Notes under the pieces: model-generated
The model's input: only the letters and a program-made list of their open reading frames with translations
What the model was told of the DNA's origin: nothing
Database searches by the model: none
Assembly (NCBI GenBank): GCA_943704425.1
Contig: CALSCP010001426.1
Span: 1-38,340 of the forward strand
DNA from: Ministeria vibrans ATCC 50519
Taxonomy: Eukaryota; Protista; Filasterea
Direction of reading: 5' to 3'
Length of the DNA stretch: 38,340 bases
Part shown: piece by piece, positions 1 to 10,188 of the stretch
Layout of the letters: every line of letters begins with the position of its first letter
Numbering within the stretch: the stretch's first letter is position 1
Position numbers and translations under genes: made by a program

Positions 1-83
<83 letters not shown>
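1..83. repeat. (AAT)n microsatellite
   Basis: Perfect ATA/AAT triplet run from the window start. Confidence 0.97.
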
Positions 84-86
<3 letters not shown>

Positions 87-246
87 TATTATTTTAATAA
101 GGAGAGAGAGAGCTGCACTCAATGTCAAAACAGGTTACAAGACGTCATATTTATGGTGCGGAAGGACTACTGTGTTTTTGTAATATACAGTCTTGTTTTG
201 ACATTGAGAACATCCCTTCTCTATCAGTTTATTTTCTTATTACACA

Positions 247-3200
247 TCAGATGAAAGATGAGGTGAGCTCCTCGAGCACAGTGCCAATAAGACGGGGCGC
301 AACACCACCACGCACGTGGCCAGAGAGCATGTCGGAGAGACGATAGCGGAGCTGGGTGAAGTCAGGGCGCTTGGTCGCGTCCATGTGCCAGCACTGCATC
401 ATTAGCTCATAGACAACGGGCGGACAGCCACGGGGCGGAGGAAGGCGCTTCCCGTCACGCAGCTTGTCGGACAACTCACGTACGCCCACCGACCGGTACG
501 GGCTAGAGAGAACAACAAAGTTGTAAAAACAGACAGCTCACACCAATCATGATCTGTACCGGACAGTGCCAAATGTCATTACTTCCCACATGACCACTCC
601 AAAAGACCACACGTCCGTCTTCGCCGAAAACTACAACAAAAATTGAAGAAAAAAAAAACACACACGTCAAAGACAGAAACGCGCATGTAAAAGGAAGAAC
701 CTTTCTGAACTCGAGGGACTCGAGAGCCATCCAACGCACTGGCAGTTTGCCTTTGCTCTGCACGCGATAGTAGTTGTCGTCACCCATCCGTCGCGATAGC
801 CCAAAGTCCGCCACCTTGATCACCGACCCCTGGCCCACAAGACAGTTGCGCGCCGCCAGCTATGCACCCACAACAATGTGGTGTCAAAAGAGAGTGAGTT
901 CGATCCCACACACAACGAAAAAAACACGTTTCATCTCGCAATGCATGTGTGACTTACATCGCGATGGACAAAGTTGAGCGTGCCCAGATACTCCATTCCT
1001 GACGCAATCTCAAGCATGATCTTGACCTGCTCCGCAATGGTCATCCTCAACTCAGCGCACGTCACACACAGTCGCAGAAAGTTGCGAAGATCACCATGCG
1101 GACAAAACTGCACAAAGAGGAACACTTAGTATCGTTTCGCACACGTACAGGCACTCTCTCTAATCACTTTGCGTATACTTCTCTCTCCCACTCTCTGTCT
1201 CTGTCTCTATTCTCTCTCCTGCTCTCTGTCTCTGTCTCTATCACTTTGTTCTTTCTCCCTCCTCACTCTCTCTCTCTCTCTTTCTGTCTCTCTCCCCATT
1301 GTACCTCAATGACAAGAAGGAGGGGCTCTTCGGGCATGCAGACGCCGATAAAGGCAATGATATTGTCGTGCTTGAAGCTTGCTTGGAGGGCTGCCTCCGC
1401 TAGGAACTCTTCGCGCTCCTTCGATGTGGCACCGTCGTGCAGTGTCTTGACGGCAACGTAGCGCGCAAGGGGCCCGTCGTTAGCCGTTGCCTTGAGCACC
1501 ACGCCAAACTCACCCTTGCCCAGCTCCTCGATAAAGTTCAGGTTGCGTCGGTCAAACCGGTAAGCTGCGAGTGCTTTGGCGGAGTCGGGAGCGACACTGG
1601 GAACGAGCACCGAGACAGACTGGTACTTGGCAAAGTCCTCGTTGTTATTATTGTTGTTGTTGTTGTTCAGCCCTGTCGTGTTGTCGTCGTACACATCAAG
1701 CGTCGAGTAAATGGAGTCACCCGGTTGACGTTTCTCGTACACATCGGTGCCGCTCTCACTGCCCATCGCCCCGCTCGTGTTGGTGTAGGTTTGGGTACCG
1801 CGGAATGGGTTGGACATGCGCGAGGAAGTCCGTCGCGTCTTGCGGAACGTCTGATAGATGGACTCAGCTCCCTCGTGCACCGTGCGCTCGTACGTCTCAT
1901 AGTCGTCGCCAGCCTCGGCAATGATGCCCGTCGTACGCTTGCCACTTGGTGACGCGAGCGTGCCGTACGCAGCCGAGACGGGCCGCTGGTACTGTCCCTC
2001 GTTTACATACGCAACATCGTCCGAGTTAGGCGGCCGTGCCCCGCCACCACCGCCAGACAAGCCGTACGCCGCTGCGTTCACATAGATATCGCTGTTATCT
2101 TTCGACTTGCTCGCCAGGTCCTGATACACATCCGCATCGAGAAGCTCCTCGTCGTCCGATGCGCTCTCAAGGCGAGGCGGCCCGTCCAGTGTTGCATAGA
2201 GGTCCTCTTCGCGTCGCTCTGCCTCCTCCATCATCATTTCTTGCACCAAATTCGCATACGCTTCGCCGCCCTCGCTCACATCTGTGACGCCATACATCTG
2301 ACGCAGGTTCTCCAAGTCAACTTGCTGGCCTTCGGCCGTCGTGAGGGTGGCGGCCGAGTAGAAGGCGGGGTCAGCCATGTCACCGGCGGGTACCGGGGGT
2401 GTCGACGGTTTCAAAGGTGCAGATGTGTCCCGTTTCGTACCGAACACATCGGGCTCCGAACTATCCTGAGGCGTTGCCTGGCGTGTCTTGAAGAATTCAA
2501 GCGGACGCGGCTCAACGTCCGCCGTGTTGATCATGCCCGCAGCACCCGCACCCGAATTCATAGCATTTAGTTCCATGCTGCTCTGACTCGTCTTGAGACG
2601 CGACTGCGAGCGACGTCGATGGCGACGCAGCACCACAAACACCACAACAATGAGCACAACACAGACAACAGCAGCAATAGCCGCAATCACAGCAGACGAG
2701 CCCGAGCTCGACGGCGACGAGCCTGCAGTAGGCGCCTGAGCCCCAGCCGGATTGGTTGCATTGCCAAACACGGAAATGAGAGAAAAGTGGTCCATGTTTC
2801 CACTGACTTTGCCCGAGGCCAGGTCCACCACCATTGCCGAGACAAACGTCCAGTCAGAAGGACCACCAAACATAACGCTGAAGTAGGAGATTGGATCGCT
2901 CTGCTGAAAGGAGCCTGTCTTGAGGCTCACTTCGGCGCGAATGGGCTTGAGCCAGGTACGCGGCGACGGACTCAGCTTGTACCAGTGGCCGCTGATGACG
3001 GCACCTGATGGACCGTCTCGCTGACACCACGGTGCATACAGCTCAACCTGAAACAACTGCGGAGTGCTCCAATAGCCCACGGGGATGGTGAGACTGAGAC
3101 CCGTCACTTCAATGACACCGCCAAGCGACGGGTCAATGACGATCGACGCCAGTGTGCTAGTGCTGTTGCACACAAACTGGCAATCGGCAACCTCGCCGTT

Positions 3201-6200
3201 GCCCAGGAGAATCGAGCCGTCAATCTGACATGTGTAGGTGAACGTGGTCGCACCCGAAATGCGACCCGTCAGCGAGTAACTCGTGTCGCACGTATACTCG
3301 GCACGTGTACCAACGGAAAACACGGGGGGCAGCACACGTGTCGCATGTGCCACATTGGGCAGTGTTGTGCTACTGCAGAGAGTCAGCGTCGTCTCACAGT
3401 TGACGCCAGTGCGCTCATCTGAGCAAGTGCAAGAGTACGTTGGATGTGAACTGACACATGTGCCATCACCTTGACAAGGCGAAGAGTCACATGCATTGAT
3501 GGGAGAAGAACAGAGTGCATCGGAGTAGCCTGTAGCGGAGCAGTCGCACGAGTAGGTCCCTTCCGCCTCCTGTTCACACACACCACCATTTTGACACGGC
3601 GACGAGGCACACTCGTCAATGTCCACATCACAAAGAGTACTCGTAAAGCCCGCCGCACATGTACACGCAAAGGAAGCAACTCCATCGGAACATTGTGCCC
3701 CATTGTGACACGGAAACGACGAACACTCATCAATATTTCCGTCGCACTGCGCTCCAGTGTATCCCGCAGCACACGCGCAGGCAAACGAGGCAACACCATC
3801 CGTACACGACGCCCCATTGCGACACGGTGATGAAGCACACTCGTCAATGCTTGACTCACAAAGTGTGCCAGTGTAGTCCTTTGCACAGTTGCAAGAAAAG
3901 GAGAACGTATGATCGAAACACTCCCCACCATTCTGACAAGGAGAAGAGTCACACTCGTCACTGTTGACGTCGCACAAGGTTCCAGTAAAGGCAGTGAGGG
4001 TGCAGTCACACAAAAATATACCCACTGACGGCTGGGTGCACACACCAGCGTTCTGGCAAGGTGATGATGCACACTCGTCAATATCATCGGAGCACAAGAA
4101 ACCCGAGTAGCCTTGAGCACAGACACAGGTAAATGCATTGGGGGCGTCTACACAGGTGGCAGCGTTCTGACAGGGAGACGAAACGCACTCGTTAATGCTG
4201 ACATCGCAGCGAGTCCCAGTGAACCCCACCGGGCACACGCACATGTATTCAGCTACTCCGTCGACACACGTGGCACCGTTCAGGCATGGCGACGAAGCAC
4301 ACTCGGCAATGTTCATCTCACACAATGTGCCCGTTTGGCCCGCCTGGCATATACACGTGAAAGACGTTCCTACAGATTGGCACGTCGACGCACCCCGGCA
4401 TGGATTGCTCAAACAGTGGTCCACAACCGAATTGCAAATTGTGCCTGTGAATCCGGTCGACGAACAGTCACAAGTAAACTGTGACACCAAATTAGAGCAC
4501 ACTCCGCCNNNNNNNNNNNNNNNNNNNNNNNNNNNNNNNNNNNNNNNNNNNNNNNNNNNNNNNNNNNNNNNNNNNNNNNNNNNNNNNNNNNNNNNNNNNN
4601 NNNNNNGCATGGATTGCTCAAACAGTGGTCCACAACCGAATTGCAAATTGTGCCTGTGAATCCGGTCGACGAACAGTCACAAGTAAACTGTGACACCAAA
4701 TTAGAGCACACTCCGCCGTTCCGGCACGGTGAAGATGCGCACTCATCAATGTCGACGGAACAGAGGCCACCGGTAAAGCCTGCGACGCACGAGCAAGCAA
4801 ACCCATCGACCCCATCGGCGCATGTGGCACCGTTCTGGCACGGTGACGACACGCACTCATCAATGTTCTCGGCACAAGTCAAGCCTGTAAACCCCGCAGC
4901 ACAGCTGCACATAAAGGATGCAACGCCGTCCGAGCAAACACCGTCATTCTGACATGGTGAAGATGCGCACTCATCAATGTCGACGGAACAGAGGCCACCG
5001 GTAAAGCCTGCGACGCACGAGCAAGCAAACCCATCGACCCCATCGGCGCATGTGGCACCGTTCTGGCACGGAGATGAGACACACTCGTTCAGGTTCACGT
5101 TACACATGGCACCGGTAAAGCCTGCGGCGCAAGTACATGAAAATCCATCAACCCCATCAACGCATGTGGCGCCGTTCTGGCACGGTAACGACGCGCACTC
5201 GTCAATGTTCACGTCGCAGAGAGTGTCAGTGAAACCCACCGAGCAGGCGCACGTGAACCCGTCTACAGTAACAATACACGCGCCATTGAGGCCGCATGGA
5301 CTCGACGCACACTTGTCAATGTTGACGTGGCAAAAGGCGCCCGTGAAGCCGACGGGGCAAGAACAAACGTGTTTACCAAGTCCCGAGCTCGTGCCTGTCA
5401 CAACAAGTTGCCCTTGCATTGACCTATGAATCTCGCACTGATAGAAGATGGTACCCTCGCTCGTTATGACTTGTTCATACGTAGATCCGACTGGAAGGGG
5501 GCCGGAGTCAAACGACATGGGGCCCGCATGCGTAGTGACCGTGTGAGGCACCGAGGTGATGGTCCAGCGAACCGTGTCACCGACGCTGACGTTGTTTGAT
5601 GCAGGTGTACACGATTGACACCATGGAATCTCGATAACTCCTAACTCAACGCACGTCCCGCCATTCTGGCACGGATTCGAGTTGCACTCCTCGATGTTAA
5701 TGTCACATCGAGTGCCGGTGAGGCCAATTGGGCACGTGCACGTAAATGATGTTTCCACCGACTGGCACGTCGACGCACCCTGACATGGATTGCTCAAACA
5801 GTGGTCCACAACCGAATTGCAAATTGTGCCTGTGAATCCGGTCGACGAACAGTCACAAGTAAACTGTGACACCAAATTAGAGCACACTCCGCCGTTCCGG
5901 CACGGTGAAGATGCGCACTCATCAATGTCGACGGAACAGAGGCCACCGGTAAAGCCTGCAACGCACGAGCAAGCAAACCCATCGACCCCATCGGCGCATG
6001 TGGCACCGTTCTGGCACGGTGACGACACGCACTCATCAATGTTCTCGGCACAAGTCAAGCCTGTAAACCCCGCAGCACAGCTGCACATAAAGGATGCAAC
6101 GCCGTCCGAGCAAACACCGTCATTCTGACATGGTGAAGATGCGCACTCATCAATGTCGTCAGAACAGAGAACACCGGTAAAGCCTGCGGCGCAAGTACAT

Positions 6201-9200
6201 GAAAATTCATCAACCCCATCGGCGCATGTGGCGCCGTTCTGGCACGGTGACGACACGCACTCATCAATGTTCTCGGCACAAGCCAAGCCTGTAAACCCCG
6301 CAGCACAGCTGCACATAAAGGATGCAACGCCGTCCAAGCAGACACCCCCATTCTGACAGGGTGAGGATGCGCACAAGTCCGAATCCACGTCACACACGGA
6401 ACCGGTACCTTCAATGCAAACACACAAATATGCATCCAACTCGTCGACGCATGTGGCAGTGTGGTGACACGGAGATGAGGCACACTCGTCAATTTGAGTG
6501 TTACAATGTAAGTCGGTGTAGCCGGCAGCACAAGTGCACATGTATGTTCCAGCAGAGTCGGTACATGTAGCCCCGTTTTGACACGGAGATGAGATGCATG
6601 GCGTTTCGAACGCGACATGAATCACTCCTGCCATGAGGCTCTGGTGAAATGCACACTCAAAGGGGAAATCACCCGTCGCGTAGAATACGAAGGAAAAATT
6701 CGCCCCTGGCAGTAGACTGCCACTGTCAAAGACACTCGGTGAATCTGTTGACGTCACGGTGTGCTCGAACTCGTCGGTGACAGTCCATGTCACGGTGTCA
6801 CCAGGTGCCACGGTGGTAATGACGTCGTTTCCGGCAGTATTGCAAATGAGAAAGAGACACCAGTCAATGTGGTGAACGATACCCGAGGGAACAAGCGGCG
6901 CGAGGGTGCCATTGACACAAAATGCAACGTCGGGAGTACATGCGCAAACATACGAGTCCAGGCCGTCGATACAGGTTGTGCCTGTAAGACAGGGGCTCGA
7001 TGAACACTCGTCAACGTTGGTGGAGCACTGCGGGCCAGTGAAGCCAGCGGCACAGGCGCACCTAAAGCCGGACACCAGGTTGGCACAGGATGCGCCATTT
7101 TCACAGGGAGACGAAGCACATTCGTTTAGATCAAAGTTGCAGAGTACGCCTGAAAATCCGTGTGGACAGACACACGTGAATACGCCAGCATTGTCAATAC
7201 ACGTCGCAGATTGCTGACAGGGCGACGAGTCACAACTGTTCACGGCAAGCGAGCAGTCCACGCCATCGTGCCCCGTGCCGGTGCAGTCGCAACTGAAGCT
7301 GTCGACACCGTCGGAGCACACACCACCGTTGAGGCAGGGCGACGATGTACACTCGTTCAGACTCGCAGAACACACATCACCGGTAAAGCCCGACGCACAG
7401 GTGCACGCAAACGCATTGGCCAAATCGATGCAGGTCCCAGCATTTTGGCACGGTGACGAGGCACACTCCATCATGGCCACGTTGCAGAGCGTGCCCGTCG
7501 TGCCTGCTGTACACGTGCACGTAAACGCGTTAAACATATTCGTGCAGGTGGCTCCCAGTTGACACGGCGACGAGGCGCACTCGTCAACGTCGCTCTCGCA
7601 CAGGGCCCCAGTAAATCCCTCGGCGCAGGTGCACACAACGGAGCCCGCGCCAGCGTTCACACAAGAACTCGCACCGTTTTGACAGGGTGACGAGGCACAA
7701 TAGTCAATTGTCGACTCGCAGAGGGTGCCTGTAAAGGAAATAGGACACTGGCAGTGGGCACTGGCCACGTTTGGATCTGACACGACGCAGGTTGCGCCGT
7801 TAAGACATTCCAAGGAGTCGCATGGGTCGGTGCAAACACCAGGCACTGAGGTCAGAATTCCCTCGCGTGTACACGTCAAGTTGAAGCTTGCAAAGGCGCG
7901 AATACCGTGTAAACCTGTGAGAACGGGGCATGTGAATACAACCGTCTCGTCTAGCGACAAATCTGTCGTATTGCTGGGCGTGGCCCCTCCTGCAATCGAC
8001 GAGGGCACGGAACATACAGCGGTTGTGTGACATGCCAAGTCGGGTGTTGATTCAAAGTTCAGCGTCGCACCCTCGGCAATGGTCAGACGTCTACCATCGG
8101 TAGCACGCAAATGACCAATGCTGGCAGTGGCATTTGCAGCAATGACGATGGTGACGTCGGGCGTGGTGCTGTTTAAATCGACGAACATGGCGGGACAAGG
8201 CACAGCGCCTGAGGCCCACTGATGCGGGTCGTTCCACAAGCCATCGCTACTGCCTTGCCAGTAGGTGTAGAAAGTTTGGCAGGCGGGACGAGTGGAAAGA
8301 TCCCACGTGAACGCCCCCGAGCTGGTGCACGTCGGCATTGTGAAGGAGACGACACCATACTGGCCGTCCACCCAGTAGAGTTCGTCGCAGACGTAGATGA
8401 GCGGTTCAAGATAGCGGGCAGTTGTGGCGGGTTGACCATGGGGAAGGTCGGGGGCCGGATCGCATTCAATGGTCGTGTCGCAGTCAACACCCTCGTAACC
8501 TGTGACACACTGCTTGAGACCATCTGACGCACAGGTGTAGGTGGGACCAGCCAGACAAAACACGGTGCAGGCCTTGGGAACATTGCCGTTGGGGTAGTAG
8601 TTGGGAGAGCATGTGCGCTCGCCCGTTTGTGGGTCGCACGTATACGCGACAGATCCCGGATCACATTCACGACAGTTGGGACCGATGTGGTTTTCGAGGC
8701 ACGTCACCTGAGCATCGAAAGTAACGGTGTTCCAATCGTTGAGAAAGACAGATTTAGTGTAACGAGTCGAGGAGGACGCGGTAAACGCTGTGCCAAAGAC
8801 CTGTCCCGTTGGCGTGGGACTGGTAAGAATGGGGGATGTGCTAATTAGGAGGAGAGGAGAGTGAGTCACAGAGTCGACGGAACACACACACACACACACA
8901 CACACACAACGTACGTTCCCTGCCGGTCGTCCGCGAACGGCGAATCGTCATCGATGCACTCGATCCGCAGGGTTATGATCGCCAGCGTAATCCTGTTTTG
9001 GCTGATGTACGTCTCCCCGTCTGTAACTGTTCCAAATTGCCAACTAAGCGAGGTTTTTTTTTTTTCAGTACATTTTTGTCGGAAACAAAAACAGCGGGTG
9101 GGGCACAGCAGAGAGGGGTATTGTGATGAGGATGAGGCATGGTAGTATGTCGCATGAAAAGGAAGGTACCTGGGGGTGTTTGTGTCCTGGATAGACGGCA

Positions 9201-9393
9201 AATCCTTGCTGGAGAATTGCGAGAATGAATACAGATTGTTGCCTGCATTCACAGCGATGCGGCAGTAGATGTCGCATGCGTTGAGAAAGTCGCAGTTGTC
9301 AAAGGTTCCAGCTATGAGGGACACGTCGACGCGATAGCCGACCTGCGCGACGCAGCAGGGCGCGAAGAGCAGCGCAAACACAACCCACAGCAT
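247..9393 (-). CDS. Multi-exon receptor tyrosine kinase with C2, DSL-like, sushi, EGF, cupredoxin and ZU5 ectodomain
   Basis: Signal peptide [16 protein letters not shown]. In-frame GT-AG splices join 9393-9170, 9043-8915 and a long exon from 8840 (interrupted by N gap 4509-4606) to ~1305. At least 32 EGF repeats (CxSSPCxNGxxC). TM segment [22 protein letters not shown] followed by RRHRRR. Tyrosine-kinase motifs [31 protein letters not shown] and [16 protein letters not shown] lie in small 3' exons. Stop at 247. Confidence 0.93.
4398..6250. repeat. Near-identical internal duplications of EGF-coding blocks around an assembly gap
   Basis: 4398-4508 equals 4607-4717 on either side of the N gap. 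~4608-4985 recurs at offset +1176 (identical alternative-frame ORFs 4614-4952 and 5790-6128). Confidence 0.9.
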
Positions 9394-10188
9394 TGAATTA
9401 GGACGGCCAGACGCGCGCTGCCGTGCTCACTTCAGAACTACAGGTGGTGGTGCCAGAAGCGGTGACGGTGGCGAGGAATTCGATTGAACTGTCAACTGTG
9501 GAGTGTGGACTGGTCAGTGATCAGACCCAAACGTCAAACAACAACAATCTTAGCGTTTCTAAACACTGCATTCGACCTGGCGGACGCCGCCGCGAAACGA
9601 GCAAGCTTACTTTGTTGAGTGTTGACTGACTTGACTGCCTCCTATGCGCTGTTCTCCCTCTCCCGCGGGCACAATCACTGTTTCTGTACGTGCACCCACC
9701 GCCCGTCAGTCGGTCGGTCACAAGAAAAATAAATAATCAATATGAATAATAAATATTGATGATTTTTCGAGGTCATTTTCATTGGTAATGAATCTCTGTT
9801 TTAATGCTTAACTTTACGCCTGTCCAACATATGCAGCGAAGAAGGCGCGGCCAAGCAAGGAAGTGGCGAGGGGGCACACCAGCCGTTCCATCGGCACAGC
9901 CAGCCCACACACACACGCCGGCCGAGCTCGCACGTACTACGCCCTCATTGCCGGACTCTTTCTCTTATACCAGGCAATGCTCACCAGGAAGGCCATCATC
10001 ATGGAAACTCGCCCGTGTTTCCAGAAGGACATGAGAGGTGCCATTTCGAATTGATCAGTCTTGTATCAATTTTTTTTTGTTTACTCGTGAGTGGTGCTGT
10101 TTCAGCGAGTGTGAACTACCTCAACGTGTGTGTCATTCACCCACTCACGTGAACGAACAGCGAACTTGATTGTTTTTTTTTTTGTGTA

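Follow-up and report, generated by a model that had tools for sequence, protein, structure and literature searches.

Among the hallmarks of animal multicellularity is Notch-Delta signalling, and the time at which its ligand was assembled is still debated. In the published placement, the DSL domain predates animals, being found in Capsaspora and ichthyosporeans, and the MNNL-DSL pair reaches no deeper than the choanoflagellates. Capsaspora receptors that resemble Notch and Delta were described by Suga et al. 2013 (PMC3753549), and the account given of that work in PMC4810162 includes a "Delta-like" receptor tyrosine kinase of Capsaspora owczarzaki with two DSL domains and EGF repeats. In the same paper, Murata and Hayashi 2016 treat MNNL as a later invention of the animal stem (PMC4810162). 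Richter et al. 2018 (PMC6040629) are the source for MNNL and DSL in one choanoflagellate, Salpingoeca dolichothecata, and themselves cite DSL in ichthyosporeans. In Ministeria, a protein tyrosine kinase was likened to DLL, JAG, and NOTCH by its EGF repeats only in a 2024 paper (PMC11594159), and Notch-related domains were mentioned in a 2025 paper (PMC12166595); we found no published report of MNNL in a filasterean in the literature. Here we analysed positions 1-38,340 of contig CALSCP010001426.1 of Ministeria vibrans ATCC 50519 (hereafter the window, 38,340 nucleotides, with all coordinates on the forward strand). On its minus strand lies a gene, translated from an ATG at 9393, that carries a candidate Notch-ligand head on a receptor tyrosine kinase.

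We consider it likely that this gene, which is expressed in its unicellular host, encodes a type I receptor tyrosine kinase with a membrane-distal tip homologous to the receptor-binding head of Delta/Serrate/Jagged. From the N terminus, its parts are a signal peptide, a C2/MNNL-like module of ~147 residues, two fused DSL modules, a Sushi-like module, a stalk of 30 or more EGF repeats, mostly of the calcium-binding type, a transmembrane helix, a linker rich in Tyr, and a kinase. A previous sequence-only reading of this DNA had proposed a Delta-like head on a tyrosine kinase; its DSL and kinase parts are borne out here, and its C2 part is only probable.

Judged by their sequences, the two DSL modules are genuine and homologous to the DSL of animal Notch ligands. 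Pfam DSL (PF01414) matched two stretches (window 8401-8848, minus strand) at 24.8 bits, a marginal score against the gathering cut-off of 24.2. The only match of phmmer among all PDB sequences was the DSL of Drosophila Serrate (E 0.015). A DSL profile made from this gene and its paralogue on contig C313 was scored against 1.84 billion representatives and retrieved 217 proteins at E<=1e-3, the top matches ranging from 4e-40, the best, to 1e-22. All ten of the matches scanned with Pfam carry DSL domains, up to 14 per protein, and one of the retrieved proteins (P0005) has a Pfam MNNL followed by six DSLs. The matches labelled by organism come from cnidarians or annelids (Nematostella, Clytia, Sanderia, Actinostola, Exaiptasia, and Owenia). 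When the head sequences were aligned with 25 profile matches (27 sequences), C47, C56, C59, C68, G73, C77, C91, C95, C103, G107, C111, and C120 were invariant or nearly so, and the six-Cys DSL framework, including the conserved Gly before C5, was present. The first module (8567..8701, minus strand), one of the two Pfam stretches, rests on this alignment with animal tandem DSLs; the second (8480..8611, minus strand) is also backed by Pfam DSL, the Serrate match, and superposition. They share the C77-C91 segment: the C5-to-C6 segment of the first is the C1-to-C2 segment of the second, as in cnidarian arrays, which explains why the modules had been described as overlapping. The 146 residues at the start of exon 3 were modelled with AlphaFold2, with the DSL alignment as input, and the model reached a pLDDT of 78. 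Foldseek placed DLL1, Jagged-1, DLL4, Jagged-2, and Serrate at its top ranks, with SCARF1 among them, and model residues 77-124 superposed on the DSL of JAG2, JAG1, and DLL4 with an rmsd of 0.7-0.8 A over 43-44 residues at 34-40% identity. The AlphaFold and Foldseek check suggested by the sequence-only reading agreed for the DSL part.

The DSL modules depart from those of animals in one loop. In the alignment, the C3-C4 loop of animal DSLs is Arg/Asp-rich and ends in GHY; in both modules of this gene it is 4-5 residues shorter, without the R-x-R-D-D and G-H residues. The two paralogues, on contigs C2159 and C313, keep a full-length loop in their second DSL, with D..D..GHY. This loop is said, from work by Cordle et al. 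in 2008, to be part of the Notch-binding face of Jagged-1. DSL-like modules appear to be more widely used in the genome: other Pfam DSL matches (C2494, C2427, and C2457; up to 30.6 bits) sit within very large open frames of 7098 and 14922 aa or long Cys-rich repeat arrays, and these loci have no C2-like head.

The gene is expressed and both of its 5′ coding introns are spliced. Splice sites were placed by eye and then compared with public runs, namely RNA contigs from runs X1-X3 (~3 kb each) and DNA run X6. All the features given here lie on the minus strand. The 5′ untranslated region holds a GT..AG intron (9496..9610; loose contig ends at 9495 match the window from 9611) that is removed in the X2 and X3 contigs and retained in the X1 contig. 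The translation opens with the start codon and a 17-residue signal peptide (9343..9393), which has equivalents in both paralogues. Exon 1 (coding 9393..9170) continues with the mature part (9170..9342), which has a CD-x-Y-C-R-I-A-V motif and is the first portion of the C2/MNNL-like module. Exon 2 (8915..9043), with W-x-F-G and one 10-residue motif, is the middle of the module. Exon 3 runs from 8840 downwards and starts with a Pro/Thr linker and a two-strand hairpin into the first DSL (8702..8840), proposed as the last C2-like strands. The motifs quoted in the sequence-only reading were all found in this translation. Intron 1 (9044..9169; 126 nt, CT..AC on the plus strand, hence GT..AG on the gene strand) is skipped in contigs of all three RNA runs, at the joint 9043/9170. 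No splice joint was seen there in DNA run X6; X1-X3 therefore hold transcripts. Around intron 2 (8841..8914; 74 nt, with a CA microsatellite and a phase common to all three paralogues), the X1-X3 contigs have 8920-9043 adjoining 8300-8840 with 5 unaligned letters between them, as expected if exon 2 ends at 8915 and the acceptor is at 8840, the aligner having stopped short because of the CA repeat. The splices that had been inferred from sequence are thus confirmed by RNA. Intron 1 is in frame and free of stops, and its retention would add 42 residues inside the C2-like module; the RNA contigs showed no retained form.

The first ~147 residues are probably a divergent beta-sandwich of the C2/MNNL type. 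The module occupies the place of MNNL, immediately behind the signal peptide and ahead of the DSL, and it measures 147 residues from the signal peptide to the first DSL Cys (57+1+42+1+46), compared with 157 positions in the Pfam MNNL model. Searches were run exon by exon and with the natural exon 1-intron 1-exon 2 read-through. An HMM built from the MNNL regions of 16 animal proteins among the profile matches was searched with each exon separately. By hmmsearch, exon 1 matched positions 37-61, a C-D-x-Y-F-k-i-C strand, and exon 2 matched positions 104-122, a strand ending in D-x-D...D. Both matches are weak, and composition-preserving shuffles reached the observed score in 6 of 2000 cases for exon 1 (p 0.003) and in 26 of 2000 for exon 2 (p 0.013). 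For the C313 paralogue, the scores observed for its exons were reached in 1/2000 and 8/2000 shuffles (p 0.0005 and 0.004). The matches are collinear, with a spacing of 41 residues compared with 43 in the template. In hhalign, two- and three-paralogue exon alignments gave P values of 0.0005-0.0018 at the matching positions of the MNNL template (0.0009-0.0018 for exon 1 and 0.0005-0.0015 for exon 2). Language-model searches of the ESM atlas pointed the same way: the read-through led to C2 clusters (0.90, 0.88, and 0.88) and to an MNNL cluster at rank 6 (0.87), exon 1 alone led to B9-C2, NT-C2, and C2 clusters (0.92-0.76), and in both searches the ten best family-bearing matches all fell in one family or clan. 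In the AlphaFold2 model of the exon 3 start, strands 24-32 and 38-46 form the hairpin into the first DSL, in a block with pLDDT 76-89. A MAFFT alignment of the read-through to full-length MNNL proteins of animals was good over exon 1 but not over exon 2, because of the insert encoded by the intron.

Below the head, the gene has the parts of a receptor tyrosine kinase, all on the minus strand. A Sushi/CCP-like module follows the second DSL directly (8294..8464; Pfam Sushi at 14.8 bits, below its cut-off, with Sushi at the same place in the paralogues), and about 200 residues without an assigned family lie between it and the first EGF. The C2-DSL-EGF order of the sequence-only reading therefore does not hold strictly. 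The EGF stalk (3390..7830; Pfam EGF at 411 + 161 bits) has 31 complete repeats by a regular-expression count of the cysteine pattern, 16 of them with a cbEGF-type start, and some further repeats interrupted by inserts or by an assembly gap. The long stalk that had been claimed is thus there, and its figure of at least 32 repeats becomes 31 complete ones plus those interrupted. At least one insert is of the plastocyanin/azurin copper-binding type (~6614-6814; Pfam Copper-bind at 26.5 bits). The gap, a run of N at 4509-4606, has near-identical EGF units on both flanks, which makes the number of repeats uncertain; these units recur at about 5790-6130, and the array looks recently amplified. The stalk region is followed by a transmembrane helix (2628..2693), a hydrophobic 22-mer with RRHRRR after it, then by a cytoplasmic linker of ~360 residues with 19 Tyr and several YxN motifs (1557..2627), and by a tyrosine-kinase domain split over at least four coding pieces (250..1556; Pfam PK_Tyr_Ser-Thr, and tblastn with a Ros-like kinase). 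With a G-loop, VAVK, HRD followed by LAARN, DFG, and PVRWMALE, the kinase looks catalytically intact. The features of a receptor tyrosine kinase are all present, namely a signal peptide, a single transmembrane helix, and a cytoplasmic kinase with a Tyr-kinase signature. One expressed gene would thus hold the signal peptide, long EGF stalk, and tyrosine kinase, as had been proposed, provided that it runs on through the gap, which we infer from the frames on either side and from the C2159 paralogue.

Searching the genome in six frames (29.7 Mb) revealed that three genes share this head, including the one in the window, and at least two of the three are kinases. All three agree in the position and phase of both head introns. 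Genome searches with exon 1 or exon 2 returned the window only, and the paralogues emerged solely via the DSL profile. The C2159 paralogue (C2159:134064-137495, together with 999-2037, minus strand, of a separate excerpt) has this head and one open frame of 4131 aa; its stalk is Sushi + EGF_CA + REJ with no EGF array, and its kinase exons are 59-85% identical to those of the window. The C313 paralogue (C313:112000-126694), whose head is ~85% like that of C2159 by eye, has a Sushi/EGF_CA/REJ-type stalk together with a transmembrane helix and a tail rich in Tyr. No kinase was found within 11 kb downstream of it, and it may be a kinase-less, Delta-like member of the family. The head thus appears to be a cassette placed on different stalks, EGF/cupredoxin in one case and Sushi/REJ in the other. 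Word-indexed protein searches with the head and cytoplasmic regions found no near-identical or related long protein.

The genome also encodes Notch-like genes. Two genes with LNRs, a transmembrane segment, and cytoplasmic ankyrin repeats, with a region resembling the juxtamembrane part of Notch, lie on C2097 (excerpt 3417-7319, minus strand) and C2583 (excerpt 1-1809, minus strand). In the first, the signal peptide directly precedes the LNRs and there are no EGF repeats; in the second, no EGF-like open frame was found in roughly 5 kb upstream of the LNRs. Further LNR loci were seen on C386 and C985, the former without EGFs in the open frame read. The sequence-only reading would have been refuted had the DNA come from an animal with known orthologues of this architecture; nothing points to a sequenced animal, the genome measuring 29.7 Mb and its HSP70 being at most 74% identical to any named protein among the matches listed. 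This HSP70, intronless and on C2175 (excerpt 1501-3318, plus strand), is 100% identical to one ENA protein, whose 90% cluster includes a EukProt entry under the name Alexandrium margalefii (MMETSP0661), which may reflect contamination of that transcriptome by a related organism.

Several observations weigh against a complete Notch-ligand head on this receptor, and most of them concern its first module. Pfam MNNL (PF07657) and C2 were silent on exon 1, exon 2, the exon 3 start, and the read-through; for MNNL there was no match at E<=10 on these stretches and none in the six-frame genome search. Three-paralogue exon profiles run against all PDB sequences missed the Notch ligands and gave only chance-level matches, such as a scorpion toxin and eIF6, and the part of exon 3 before the DSL had no significant MNNL match in hmmsearch or hhalign. 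The module has four Cys compared with the usual six, placed off the Cys columns of MNNL. A single-sequence AlphaFold2 model of the read-through (window 8917-9342, minus strand) had a pLDDT of 34 and was unusable, and the ESM-atlas recognition values, 2188 and 2218, lie under the trust level, which makes those matches leads only. It is therefore possible, though in our view doubtful, that these residues form a beta-rich module that is specific to the lineage and has no relation to MNNL or C2, and that the gene is simply another filasterean kinase receptor with two DSLs and EGF repeats, like that of Capsaspora. The silence of Pfam, the missing Notch ligands in the PDB search, the different Cys pattern, and the shortness of the targeted matches (19-25 columns) would all fit this explanation. 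However, each of the two exons matches the MNNL profile on its own, with the matches in order and at the right spacing, in this gene and in the tested paralogue; the three-paralogue hhalign profiles also match MNNL, both language-model searches reach the C2 clan, and size and position equal those of MNNL. The C2 (MNNL) domain of the sequence-only reading consequently survives as a probable assignment, favoured by weak profile matches and language-model leads and left without a Pfam match. The fit of the DSL model to Notch ligands counts as corroboration only and is not independent, because the input alignment was DSL-rich. We give almost no credence to the idea that the DSL modules themselves are generic EGF or laminin-type EGF repeats. 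EGF_laminin (12.5 bits) and a likewise weak PEAR1L-EGF match do overlap them, and in the six-frame genome search DSL scored 21.2 bits, under the cut-off of 24.2. On the protein, however, DSL is the best Pfam family and exceeds its cut-off, the family profile retrieves DSL proteins at the top and not EGF proteins, and the structural matches are the DSLs of Notch ligands; the two overlapping modules of the sequence-only reading thus stand.

The joining of head and kinase was also considered. The N run interrupts the open frame within the EGF array and the reading frame changes there, and the RNA contigs span only the first ~3 kb, so that head and EGF on one side and kinase on the other could be two genes joined through an assembly gap. 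This is very improbable, as both parts lie on the same strand, open frames with near-identical EGF units reach the gap on either side, and the C2159 paralogue carries this head on a closely related kinase with no gap between them, which argues that head and kinase are one gene here too. In the window, the continuity from head to kinase across the gap is nevertheless taken from sequence. A further possibility is that the head has a true Delta function, binding a Notch-like receptor of the same organism in cell-cell signalling with the kinase as an extra output. The genome does encode LNR-transmembrane-ankyrin proteins, and the head is homologous to one that binds Notch. We regard this as improbable, however: DSL ligands bind the EGF repeats of Notch (PMC4810162), whereas neither of the LNR-ankyrin genes examined, two in number, has EGF repeats ahead of its LNRs. 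In addition, both DSLs are without the conserved Arg/Asp-rich C3-C4 loop, with 4-5 residues missing. Canonical Notch-ligand activity is therefore unlikely, given the shortened receptor-binding loop and two LNR-ankyrin genes without EGF repeats.

We propose instead that the protein is a receptor or adhesion sensor rather than a Notch ligand of the animal kind, its most likely function being contact or ligand sensing by the head with a phosphotyrosine output. The head would touch a partner on another surface, possibly lipid and calcium through the apex of the C2-like module and protein through the DSLs. Contact would cluster the receptors, the kinases would trans-phosphorylate, and the phosphotyrosines of the linker would recruit SH2/PTB proteins. 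It counts against this mechanism that it is deduced from architecture.

If the first module is an MNNL-type C2, the complete ligand head would be as old as the common ancestor that animals share with filastereans and choanoflagellates, and the ancestral head would have been wired to phosphotyrosine signalling and not to Notch. We can only speculate, and rather doubtfully, that the complete head (C2/MNNL + DSL) was one unit before the filasterean/choanozoan split, with a contact-sensing receptor tyrosine kinase as its early context, and that animal Delta is a derivative that lost the kinase and came to be paired with an EGF-bearing Notch; in this genome the head would be a mobile cassette on different stalks. 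That the gene is a "source of the Notch-ligand module", a candidate role in the sequence-only reading, cannot be deduced from its presence alone. The gene offers a concrete protein for asking what the partner of a Delta head is where a canonical Notch appears to be lacking.

Finally, a Delta-like head on a kinase receptor is not unprecedented, as the Capsaspora receptor has been reported and MNNL + DSL has been reported in a choanoflagellate. According to its published description, the Capsaspora Delta-like receptor tyrosine kinase resembles this gene in its two DSLs, EGF repeats, and tyrosine kinase. That description reports no MNNL or C2 before the DSLs, where the window gene has a probable C2/MNNL-like one, and the window gene further differs from it by a Sushi-like module after the DSLs and by plastocyanin-like inserts. 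The Salpingoeca dolichothecata protein likewise comes from a non-animal holozoan and combines MNNL with DSL; it differs in belonging to a choanoflagellate, in having both Pfam domains detected, and in lying on a partial contig with no kinase reported. The C2159 and C313 paralogues share the signal peptide-module-DSL-DSL-Sushi head, with introns identical in position and phase, and differ in their Sushi + EGF_CA + REJ stalk and in the full-length loop of their second DSL. The best sequence matches are cnidarian multi-DSL proteins (Nematostella XP_032232843.2, Clytia delta-like B, and Actinostola KAK3698607.1), in which MNNL is followed by DSLs chained by a common Cys-Cys segment, overlapping as they do here. 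Unlike the gene described here, these proteins have 6-14 DSLs, no kinase, mostly short tails, and a full-length C3-C4 loop with D..GHY. Animal Delta/Serrate/Jagged proteins (4CC0, 4XBM, 5MVX, and 7ALT) also have an N-terminal module, DSL, and EGF-type repeats in a type I membrane protein, but with one DSL, EGF1 directly after it, a short non-catalytic tail, and a head that binds the EGF repeats of Notch. Its two DSLs, the Sushi-like module and ~200 residues that come ahead of EGF1, and its kinase tail place the Ministeria gene outside the canonical Delta/Serrate/Jagged architecture.

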